Assembly (NCBI RefSeq): GCF_902713615.1
Contig: NC_052176.1
Span: forward strand, 3,472,001 to 3,536,000
Direction: 5' to 3'
Source of the DNA: Scyliorhinus canicula
Lineage: Eukaryota
DNA length: 64,000 nucleotides
The notes under the pieces: model-generated
Told to the model about the DNA's origin: nothing
Database searches by the model: none
What the model saw: only the letters and a program-made list of their open reading frames with translations
Shown: positions 20,131-23,689 of the stretch, piece after piece
How positions within the stretch are numbered: position 1 is the stretch's first letter
Layout of the letters: each line of letters begins with the position of its first letter
Made by a program: the position numbers and the translations under genes

Positions 20131-23100
20131 TTACACCACAGAGGCGCAGGAACTGGCATCTCGCTTTGGAGGTGCATAATGACGTGGGGGACACGGCAGG
20201 CGCATTCTGAAGTGCCCCTCTGCCGGAGTGGCAGCATTGATAGAGGATGCGCGTTGCAGTCCAAGTGGGTCAAACGCTCCGAGGGTAGGGGTTTTCAAGA
20301 GGCCGGATTGGGGACTTCCTCTCTGGGCGGGGGCACTTAGCAGGCCAGGGCGGGCACTCAGTCCCAGAGCAGGACTATTTAACAGGCCAGGGCGGCCACC
20401 CAGGCCAAGAGTGGGGGCGCTTAGCCGGCCAGAGCGGGCACCCATCCCGAGAGTGGGGGCGCTTAACCGGCCACCCATGCCAAGAGTGGGGGCACTTAAC
20501 CGGCTAGAGCGGGCACCCATTCCATGAGCGGGGGTATTTAACCGGCCAGAACGGGCACCCATCCTCAGAGTTGGGGTGTCCAGCAGGCCAGACTGTGCAC
20601 TCATTACCGGGGCGGGGGTACTTAACAGGCTGGGCCGGGCACTCAATCCCGAAGGGGGGGTATTTAACAGGCTGGGGCGGGCACTCAATCCCGAAGGGGG
20701 GGCATTCAACAGGCTAGGGCGGGCACTCAATCCCGAAGGGGGGGCATTCAACAGGCTGGGTCGGACACTCTTTCCCAGGCAGGGTGTTTGTAACAGGCCA
20801 GGTAGGGCAGCCGTTCCCCTAACGGGAGACTGTGCCCTCGTGTCCTTGGCGAGTTTATTTAACGGACGAGACTTGACACTCGTTTCGGTAGCCGGGGGGT
20901 CCAACAGAGCGGACTGGGCGCTCGTTTCTGTCGCAGGGGGGTCCAACGGACCAGACTGGGCGCTCGTTTCCATCGCAGGGGCGTCCGACAGCGCAGTCTG
21001 CGCGCTCGCCTCTGGTGCCGGGGCGTTTTCTGGCCCAGACGGGGCACTCGTTCCCGCAGCTGGGGTAATTAACGGGCCAGACTGGGCGCTTGTTTCCGCA
21101 ACGGGGGCATCTAACAGGCCGGTCTGTGCATTTGTTTCTGCCGCAGGTGTGTCTAATTGACCAGTCGGCACGCTCGTTTCGGCAGCTGGGGTAGTTAAGG
21201 GGCCGGACTGTGCACTACTTCCCGCGGCAGGGGTACTTAACGGGCCAGATTGGGCACCAGTTTCTGTAGCGGGGGTATTTAACCGTCCAGACGGGGCACT
21301 CGGCACTTTAGCAGGGGTATCCAACGCACTGGATTGCTCACTTGTCCCAAGTGTGGAGGCGTTTGATTGGCCGGACTGTGCACTCATTCCTGGGCCGGGG
21401 GTTTTTGACAAGCCGGAATGGACCTTAGTTGCCAGGGCGGGAGATTTTAACCTTCTGGAACCCCGGCCGGAGGTTTTTGACAGGCCGGAACGGACGTGCA
21501 TCCCTGGGCTGGGAGCTTTTAGCAGTCCAGATCGAGGGCTCATTCCCAGGACGGGGGTATTTAACAGGGCAGACCGGGGACTCGTTCCCAGCGTGGGAGT
21601 ATTTAACAGGCCATTTCGGGGATTCTCCCTCATGGCGTGAATATTCAATTGGCCAGATCGGGGATTCTCTCTCAGAGAGGGGGGGCTTAACAAGCCAGAT
21701 CGGGGATTCTCTCTCAGATAGGGGGGGCTTAACAGGCCAGATCGGGGATTCTCTCCCAGATAGGTGGGGCTTAACAGGCCAAATCGGGGATTCTCTCCCA
21801 GAGAGGGGGGGCTTAACAGGCTAGGTCGGGGATTCTCTCCCAGAGAGGGGGGTCTTAACAGGCTAGGTCGGGGATTCTCTCCCAGAGAGGGGGGGCTTAA
21901 CAGGCTAGGTCGGGGATTCTCTCCCAGAGAGGGGGGTCTTAACAGGCTAGGTCGGGGATTCTCTCCCAGAAAGGGGGGTCTTAACAGGCCAGATCGGGGA
22001 TTCTCTCCCAGAGAGGGGGGGCTTAACAGGCCAGATCGGGGATTCTCTCTCAGATAGGGAGGGCTTAACAGGCCAGATCGGGGATTCTCTCCCACAGAGG
22101 GGGGGCTTAACAGGCCAGATCGGGGATTCTCTCCCAGATAGGGGGGGTTTAACAGGCCAGATCGGGGATTCTCTCCCAGATAGGGGGGGTTTAACAGGCC
22201 AGATCGGGGATTCTCTCCCAGAGAGGGGGGGCTTAACAGGCCAGATCGGGGATTCTCTCCCACAGAGGGGGGGCTTAACAGGCTAGGTCGGGGATTGTCG
22301 CCCAGGGCAAGGGTATTTAACAAGTCAGATCGGGGACTTGCTCCCATGGCAGGGTCATTTAACAGGCCAGACCGGGGCCTCGATCCCAGGACAGAGGCAA
22401 TTAAATGGTCTGAACGGCGCTTCACTCCCGGGAAGGGGGCATTTAACAGAGCAGAGCGAGGACTCGCTGCCGGGTCAGGGGCATTTAAGAGGGAAGAACG
22501 GGGAGTTGCTCCCGGGAAGGGGGCATTTAACAGGGCAGAACGAGGACTCGCTCGCGGGGCAGGGGCATTTAACAGGGCGGAACGAAGACTCGCTGCCGGG
22601 GCAGGGGCATTTAAGAGGGCAGAACGGGGAGTTGCTCCCGGGAAGGGGGCATTTAACAGGGCAGAGCGAGGACTCGCTGCCGGGTCAGGGGCATTTAACA
22701 GGGCAGAACGGGGAGTCGCTCCCGGGAAGGGGGCATTTAACAGGGTGGGACGAGGACTCGCTCCCGGGGCATTTAAGAGGGCAGAACGAGGACTCGCTCC
22801 CGGGGCTGGGGCATTTAACAGGCTGGGCAGGATGTTCGCTCCCGGGAAGGGGGTATTTAACAGGCCAGAACGGGGATTCACTCCCAGGGCAGGGGCATGT
22901 AACAGGCCAGATCGGGGATTCGCTCCCGGGGCTGGGGCACTTAACAGGGCGGATCGGGGATTCGCTCCCAGGGCAGGGGGATTTAACAGGCCAGAAGGGA
23001 GACTCTCTCCCCGGAAGGGGGTATTTAACAGGCCAGATCGGGGATTCGCTCCCGGGGCTGGGGCATGTAACAGGCCAGATCGGGGATTCGCTCCCGGGGC

Positions 23101-23689
23101 TGGGGCACTTAACAGGGCGGATCGGGGATTCACTCCCAGGGCGGGGGTTTGTAATAGGCCAAATCGGGGATTCGCTCCCAGGGTGGGGGTACTTAGCAGT
23201 GAGTGCCGTGTCCGCTTGGCGGGGGAGAGTAAATCGTGTGGCAGTGTCCTCTTTGCAGCCTGCCGGTTCTCCAGCGTTGGCGGAGGTAAAGGAAGGCAAG
23301 CGCGATGGTGCGGGAAGCTTCTTTTGGCGAGGTCAGGCGTGAACTGCCTCCCAAGTCCGCGGTCCTTGTGCACATCATTGGCGGGGTCGGGCTGAAATGG
23401 CTCAACGTCTTGCCCACTCGCCTCAACATGTCCGTCGTCCAGGTGATAGCGAGTGTAACTCGACATTTGCTGTCCATACATATCTAGGGAATCACGTGGT
23501 GCCCAGGTGCACTCTGCGGCCTGGTGGTTTGGTCTTCCGCACCGCTGACAATTTCCCACCACACTGCCGACTGATTGGAGCTGGGTGCTTGCCTCAGATG
23601 ACCGAATCCTAATTTTGTTTCAGGTGAAGTCGGCGAGATCCATCCTGTTAATGGCTTTCAGTGCTTCTTCCTGGATGCAAACACATCAC
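20131..23689 (-). CDS. RBM14/RBM4-family paralogue exon: broken RRM2 relic, CCHC knuckle, about 70 x 14-aa Pro/Leu repeats. ORF 23562-20131; first in-frame ATG at 23481 gives 1116 aa
   Basis: Acceptor ctctttctcag|gtgat at 23690/23689. QEEALKAINRMDLADFT*NKIRIRSS aligns to [26 protein letters not shown] of the + gene, and CQRCGRPNHQAAEC to CQRCGRQGHQARDC. The frame is uninterrupted for 3.4 kb. C-terminal RMRLPCPPRHY resembles RBM14 RTRLSPPRASY. Confidence 0.7.

Follow-up and report, generated by a model that had tools for sequence, protein, structure and literature searches.

The stretch of DNA analysed here, referred to as the window, comprises 64,000 nt of Scyliorhinus canicula contig NC_052176.1 (assembly GCF_902713615.1; positions 3,472,001-3,536,000 of the forward strand), and all coordinates below are window-based. 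Its minus strand carries a repeat gene whose main open reading frame (ORF; 20131-23481, stop included) predicts a protein of 1116 aa, about 114 kDa and an isoelectric point of 11.4. This gene lies head to head with an intact RBM4-like gene on the plus strand (31954-36619). It is an RBM4 paralogue that has lost its RNA-binding domains and probably turned into a repeat protein; its relatives are annotated without function, and literature searches on them and on RBM4/RBM14 paralogues in sharks found nothing relevant. We consider it probable that the locus is a live protein-coding gene rather than a dead copy, because it combines a spliced transcript, a maintained reading frame and conserved synteny with purifying selection, seen both among S. 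canicula individuals and in comparisons of orthologues.

The transcript is documented by contigs from four runs (X8, X13, X25 and X29) of four studies, taken as four individuals. That these runs are RNA is a guess; the contigs behave as RNA would. Across the four runs, depth is 20-70 over approximately 19130-23690 and only 0-6 beyond 23690. The match of three contigs stops at 23690 and continues for 59-76 further letters (59 in X13 and 76 in X29, X25 being the third). The X25 overhang, the only one whose letters were seen, corresponds to window 31538-31567 and identifies the exon 1 donor as CTCTCTGG followed by GTAAGC, with 31537 as the final exon base, spliced to the acceptor at 23689. A sequence-only reading of this DNA had proposed the same acceptor, which contigs from all four studies use, and a donor at 31571, which proved to be 34 nt off. 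A polypyrimidine tract and AG lie directly upstream of the RRM2 remnant on the minus strand.

The mRNA consists of a short noncoding exon 1 (31613-31537, minimum extent; 60-77 nt from the X25, X13 and X29 overhangs) and a single 4.6-kb exon (23689 to approximately 18990), separated by a 7.8-kb intron (23690-31536) delimited by the drop in depth beyond 23690. As the sequence-only reading had stated, no RRM1-like exon exists on the minus strand between 23690 and 31570, as judged by tblastn with the RRM exon of the plus-strand gene. Exon 1 sits in a CpG-rich promoter common to the RBM4-like gene, and its sole ORF is an ATG-TGA mini-upstream ORF (uORF). Exon 2 opens with a 5' leader (23482-23689) that holds the remnant of the C-terminal half of RRM2, the CCHC knuckle and two uORFs of 12 and 7 codons, the second of which reads MDLADFT before its stop. 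The 3' untranslated region (UTR; 18990-20130) is covered by contigs down to approximately 19130, where a TA/TG microsatellite starts, and an ATTAAA lies at 19010-19005. Together, the exon 1-exon 2 junction contigs and the coverage near ATTAAA mark a spliced, polyadenylated transcript, the poly(A) end itself being putative.

Several features of the noncoding parts were observed in passing. The 3' UTR differs in length among the four runs, with a TGTG insertion at 19835 and microsatellite differences at 19712-19752. The stretch at 18965-19017, around the putative poly(A) site, matches the orthologous loci of Stegostoma (L001, 17510-17551, 88%) and Chiloscyllium punctatum (L002, 19442-19491, 82%), in each case several kb 3' of the coding exon, and represents a repeat or else a conserved element of the 3' end. 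Intron 1 contains tRNA-derived copies resembling short interspersed elements (SINEs) at 24319-24712, approximately 25127-25319, 27568-27737 and 29100-29705; RNA contig depth reaches 10^4-10^5 on the first of these, and the element is also present in L001 (approximately 15155-15361) and L002 (approximately 20031-20156).

The predicted protein begins with a unique N-terminal part of 93 aa, followed by an array of approximately 70 tandem 14-aa units (20263-23202, minus strand; consensus SGLLNxPxLGxNPR) and a unique tail. A 42-bp period extends across 20329-23189. The units form four diverged blocks that include a few in-frame variants of 11 and 13 aa, much as had been described from the letters alone, and the frame, said to be open for about 3.4 kb, runs without a stop to 20131 from either a GTG at 23562 (1143 aa) or the ATG at 23481 (1116 aa). 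Next to the array, a stretch resembling a bipartite nuclear localization signal (NLS), KRTLPHDLLSPAKRTR (23206-23253, minus strand), has the counterpart KRKMPQEDKPAFAKRSR in Chiloscyllium; the shared pattern is KR-(10)-KR.R, and the NLS assignment derives from this pattern. The C-terminal tail PRHYAPPK (20164-20187, minus strand) aligns in DNA and in frame with PRHFTPPK of Chiloscyllium. It had been likened to the tail of RBM14 and is better described as a PRH[YF]xPPK tail, common to S. canicula and Chiloscyllium, that is conserved within the shark family.

In composition the protein is rich in Pro, Leu, Ser, Ala, Gly and Arg, with 16% Pro, 15% Leu and 0.8% Tyr. It is probably disordered: a single-sequence AlphaFold prediction for residues 1-400, which is weak evidence, has a mean predicted local distance difference test score of 42, all residues staying below 70. 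Word-indexed protein searches returned nothing, whether the unique N-terminal part was represented by residues 1-115 of the 1116-aa ORF or by a 154-aa piece begun at the GTG, and exact look-up of the three possible ORFs in a 15-billion collection gave no match. An exact copy of the 1116-aa protein is present in the ESM Atlas, which implies that the start at ATG 23481 is already called in some annotation. An 'extensin-like' cluster suggested by ESM Atlas feature search scored 0.76, under the usable level, and was rejected.

An ORF in a tandem repeat need not encode anything, and the locus could instead be a transcribed unitary pseudogene or a promoter-associated long noncoding RNA, held open by a recent, stop-free expansion of a 42-bp minisatellite and by concerted evolution. 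The window supplies its own control for chance ORFs that arise when repeat units are divisible by three: the noncoding satellite at 4550-8580, like that at 11968-12863, has units of approximately 27-33 bp and yields ORFs of up to 668 aa. Such lengths speak for the noncoding alternative, but in the satellite all six frames are open, whereas stops over 20134-23481 number 0 in the coding frame and 73, 23, 66, 14 and 20 in the other five. Nor does the open frame depend on uniform repeats, as it also crosses the 93-aa N-terminal part, the unique tail and block C, where units are diverged at 63% of their synonymous sites (pS 0.63).

Variation within S. canicula falls at synonymous sites of this one frame, unlike that of a chance ORF, which would lack a codon-position bias. 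At least 29 single-nucleotide polymorphisms (SNPs) in the ORF distinguish the four runs from the reference. The 29 listed comprise 11 nonsynonymous and 18 synonymous changes and no stops, for a nonsynonymous to synonymous polymorphism ratio (pN/pS) of 0.24 (2411 nonsynonymous and 937 synonymous sites; binomial p 1.3e-4), whereas the ratio is 1.5-1.7 in the two remaining minus-strand frames. A test matched for mutation type and CpG context predicts 9.7 synonymous SNPs, fewer than the 18 seen (p 0.0012). The unique N-terminal part has five SNPs, every one synonymous, including a double change from CGG to AGA that keeps Arg. No indels were seen in the parts of the ORF covered by RNA contigs, and a frameshift that segregates just upstream of ATG 23481 indicates that frameshifts are tolerated there. 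The neutral evolution expected of a pseudogene is found only in the leader with its RRM2 and knuckle remnants, not in the ORF.

Evidence from other sharks points the same way. The orthologues surfaced only with full HMMER scanning: against 1.84 billion representatives, it found P0001 (E 1.5e-38), annotated as 'uncharacterized protein LOC125449303' of Stegostoma tigrinum (XP_048380948.1), and a second search seeded with this protein added proteins of Chiloscyllium plagiosum and C. punctatum (P0145 and P0146; 396 and 397 aa). The scan also returned two models of the sawshark Pristiophorus japonicus, 'RNA-binding protein 4B-like isoform X3' (P0116) and '4.1-like isoform X2' (P0142). Most of the other 139 matches, judged by about 20 sequences and by source names (coral, tick, wasp, fish, bacteria), are unrelated low-complexity proteins and were set aside. 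Relatives of the gene are thus already in public annotation, without function and under the labels 'uncharacterized' or 'RBM4B-like'.

In Stegostoma (L001) and C. punctatum (L002), a single coding exon stands head to head with an RRM gene that blastn identifies as the orthologue of the plus-strand gene (80-88% identity), and synteny is conserved. The annotation record for C. plagiosum (LOC122543839) lists the same RRM neighbour. DNA alignment shows the acceptor to be conserved across S. canicula, Stegostoma and C. punctatum; exon 1 was not found in the Stegostoma or Chiloscyllium loci by blastn. The three orectolobiform proteins share with S. canicula the acceptor, the RRM2 remnant, a unique middle part, the NLS-like stretch and the repeat units, and that of C. 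punctatum shares the tail as well. Elements conserved across species include YGQQ.S.YT, LENR and the unit core SGLLN[TA]PxL, whereas the second half of the unit reads GxNPR in S. canicula and RKSA[QE] in orectolobiforms. The orthologues differ in being 382-397 aa long with approximately 15 units, in having their ATG inside the RRM2 remnant, and in the loss of the first two knuckle cysteines. The sawshark models resemble S. canicula in their decayed RRM2 half ('DSAFVHVEHKEEALKAISKTESTDVKARKIGDQLS') and knuckle and lack RRM1; they differ in a 77-aa non-RRM coding first exon and in ending shortly after the knuckle.

Codon comparison of Stegostoma with C. punctatum, both of which have few, diverged units, gives a nonsynonymous to synonymous substitution ratio (dN/dS) of 0.44 (bootstrap 0.33-0.58), whereas shifted frames give 0.99 and 1.09. 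This is the comparison that the sequence-only reading had proposed as a check on its idea of a repurposed duplicate. The loss of the RRMs is, by these comparisons, old, because the RRM-less form occurs in both galeomorph and squalomorph sharks, two superorders. The alternative given in that reading, a young pseudogene, conflicts with this distribution and with a DNA identity of only about 60% between the minus copy and the plus-strand gene.

Several observations nevertheless weigh against a coding gene. GC content at third codon positions is 0.56 in the ORF against 0.83 in the neighbouring gene, and codon usage is unlike that of a well-adapted gene. The ancestral start has been closed by a TGA, three upstream ATGs precede the main ATG, and the +4 base of the latter is weak. 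Selection within the array appears weak, with pN/pS among repeat units of 0.4-1.0, which is not decisive, and near 1 in blocks A and B. Ten further differences fall outside the SNP listing, and the contigs are fragmented across the repeat block of greatest uniformity. The tail of the Stegostoma protein is frameshifted. Under the usual 50-nt rule, nonsense-mediated decay is triggered by stops located well upstream of a junction; every stop codon of this transcript lies either in the last exon or no more than 30 nt from the sole junction, so that decay would spare even a noncoding transcript and expression by itself proves little about coding. Coding status is built on RNA contigs and sequence comparison, and translation is predicted. 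Even so, frame-specific openness, the excess of synonymous SNPs, the spliced transcript and purifying selection on the orthologues favour the proposal of the sequence-only reading, an inverted duplicate from the RBM4 family, stripped of its RRMs and encoding a repeat protein from ATG 23481, and they make a noncoding origin of the ORF unlikely. As to the Stegostoma tail, frame-changing differences from Chiloscyllium and S. canicula occur close to the 3' end, at approximately 11100-11290 of L001, the annotated protein ending in PCPGEQC with the tail APHQFVPPK behind a stop, and reflect either real decay or an assembly error.

The 5' leader records the origin of the gene. The intron position is identical in the minus copy and the plus-strand gene, as shown by their aligned exon starts, and the approximately 60% DNA identity holds over the shared part, from the acceptor through the knuckle. 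Immediately after the acceptor, the alignment with exon 2 of the plus-strand gene has a 10-nt gap in the minus copy, which bears out the earlier estimate of about 10 missing nucleotides. The RRM2 remnant is consequently split over two frames, reading GDVFASRKKH and a stop in the first, and IQEEALKAINRMDLADFT, a stop and NKIRIRSSEA...CQRCGRPNHQAAEC in the next. The TGA noticed in place of the RRM2 Gly codon (23620-23622, minus strand) is genuine: it is invariant among the four RNA runs, reads GGA in Stegostoma and Chiloscyllium, and closes the ancestral frame begun at the MDLADF ATG. By descent, from exon homology and intron position, the gene belongs to the RBM4 family. The ORF has no Pfam RRM and thus lacks the two RRMs of an RBM4/Lark-type protein, and the CCHC knuckle that such a protein contains lies here 5' of the ATG, behind the TGA.

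The start codon has probably shifted as well. S. canicula has two ATGs of its own, at 23481 and 23466, where both orectolobiforms have AGG and AAG. Conversely, the annotated orectolobiform ATG (MKAINK) is CTG in S. canicula, and the MDLADF ATG is kept in all three species.

These features bear on the possibility that translation from GTG 23562 or another non-AUG codon yields a knuckle-bearing RNA-binding protein. The knuckle remnant (CQRCGRPNHQAAEC; 23509-23550, minus strand) looks intact in the reference allele, where it keeps its four zinc ligands and is read in phase with the repeats; its identity to the sawshark knuckle is 77%. To that extent its description as intact was right, but it scores 15.9 bits against Pfam zf-CCHC, below the cut-off of 20.8, and it lies outside the ORF. 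No in-frame ATG occurs between the TGA and 23481, so none reaches the knuckle. One extra nucleotide at 23500-23501, between the knuckle and the ATG and about 20 nt upstream of the latter, is present in X8 and X29 and absent from X25, X13 and the reference, putting the knuckle out of frame with the ATG in two of the four individuals. The segregation of this insertion just 5' of the ATG means that the knuckle is not tied to the repeat frame and is not part of the protein. Given also that zebra and bamboo sharks have lost the first two cysteines of the knuckle, a knuckle-bearing product is very improbable, and the upstream GTG start proposed in order to keep the knuckle loses its rationale. The least credible account, an intact two-RRM RBM4 paralogue disguised by assembly errors or with its RRM exons elsewhere, can be dismissed, because contigs of four independent individuals share the TGA and the short exon start, exon 1 is a 60-77-nt noncoding piece, the intron has no RRM-like exon, and the orthologues lack RRM1.

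Comparison with known systems places the repeat gene near RBM4 by descent and apart from it in product. With RBM4/RBM4B (the Lark family, exemplified by the plus-strand gene) it shares the start of exon 2 at a homologous intron position, an alignable C-terminal half of RRM2 and knuckle, and an adjoining position with a promoter region in common. It differs in the lack of RRM1, in an RRM2 broken by the 10-nt deletion and the TGA, in a knuckle outside the ORF, and in having about 70 Pro/Leu/Ser-rich 14-aa units where RBM4 has a Tyr/Ala-rich tail. RBM14 (CoAA) combines two RRMs with a long prion-like low-complexity domain that is needed for paraspeckles and phase separation (PMC4539981, PMC6796953). 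The repeat gene resembles it in deriving from the same RRM subfamily and in its very long repetitive C-terminal region, for which disorder is predicted. It is not an RBM14, however, as the domain of RBM14 is rich in Tyr, Ala, Ser and Gln and accompanied by both RRMs, whereas the repeat ORF is RRM-free, poor in Tyr and rich in Leu.

Taken together, the comparisons suggest the following history. A duplicate of an RBM4-type gene, arisen long ago and placed head to head with the intact copy under a common promoter, would have shed RRM1 together with the first half of RRM2. Among sharks this duplicate may then have become a gene for a basic, probably disordered protein of 14-residue units with the core SGLLNxPxL. 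In the S. canicula lineage, a G-to-T change would have created the TGA in the RRM2 remnant, so that translation from the MDLADF ATG now stops after 7 codons. The start would have moved to the lineage-specific ATG 23481 downstream of the TGA, leaving the knuckle in the 5' leader, and the array would have expanded approximately five-fold, to about 70 units from the roughly 15 found in zebra and bamboo sharks. On sequence grounds, the locus is a fast-changing yet constrained protein gene since the loss of its RRMs.

What the protein does can be approached only through its sequence patterns, a further reason for caution. The bipartite-NLS-like stretch suggests a nuclear product. The array most likely acts as a multivalent platform that would display a single short linear motif many times over to a partner, and there may be a functional tie to the co-regulated RBM4-like neighbour. 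A more specific proposal, which we advance tentatively and regard as doubtful in its entirety, is that the gene founds an undescribed family of shark nuclear proteins: an RBM4 duplicate without RNA-binding domains would express a motif array from a bidirectional promoter and serve as scaffold or decoy for a partner in the RBM4/RBM14 system, with valency set by the number of units and a nonsense mutation survived through a downstream start.

The neighbouring RBM4-like gene has RRM2 split between two plus-strand exons: one (31954-32284) encodes RRM1 plus the N-terminal half of RRM2, and another, from 36063, encodes the remainder of RRM2, followed by the knuckle and a Tyr-rich tail, its start segment running into CQRCGRQGHQARDC. 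Pfam recognizes RRM_1 and zf-CCHC in its product, and the best solved-structure relatives are RRM2 of RBM30/RBM4 and RRM1 of RBM4B (E ~1e-22), with the RRM of RBM14 third. Elsewhere in the window, a weak RRM-like tblastn match (8897-9058; E 0.11) lies beside satellite DNA, approximately 98 copies of a 51-bp G-rich unit occupy 44182-48964 with GC skew up to +0.9, and approximately 225 copies of a 32-bp GT-rich unit, broken by masked N runs, occupy 55734-62444, where ORFs of about 2300 aa in three minus frames are chance ORFs. An ORF at 53947-54813 on the minus strand has a reverse-transcriptase-like stretch (...FADDTK...) and is probably a fragment of a long interspersed element (LINE); a similar piece is found in L001 at 9524-9904.

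By domain logic the locus looks like a pseudogene, and its relatives are labelled 'uncharacterized' or 'RBM4B-like', which calls for caution in annotation. In the repeat gene, nature has separated the low-complexity tail of an RNA-binding protein from its RNA-binding domains, and selection has since maintained that tail for a very long time. Since the motif core is conserved while copy number differs about five-fold, the family is a useful system for asking what a repeat array does alone, and it may shed light on the evolution of valency and on the survival of a nonsense mutation through a shifted start codon.

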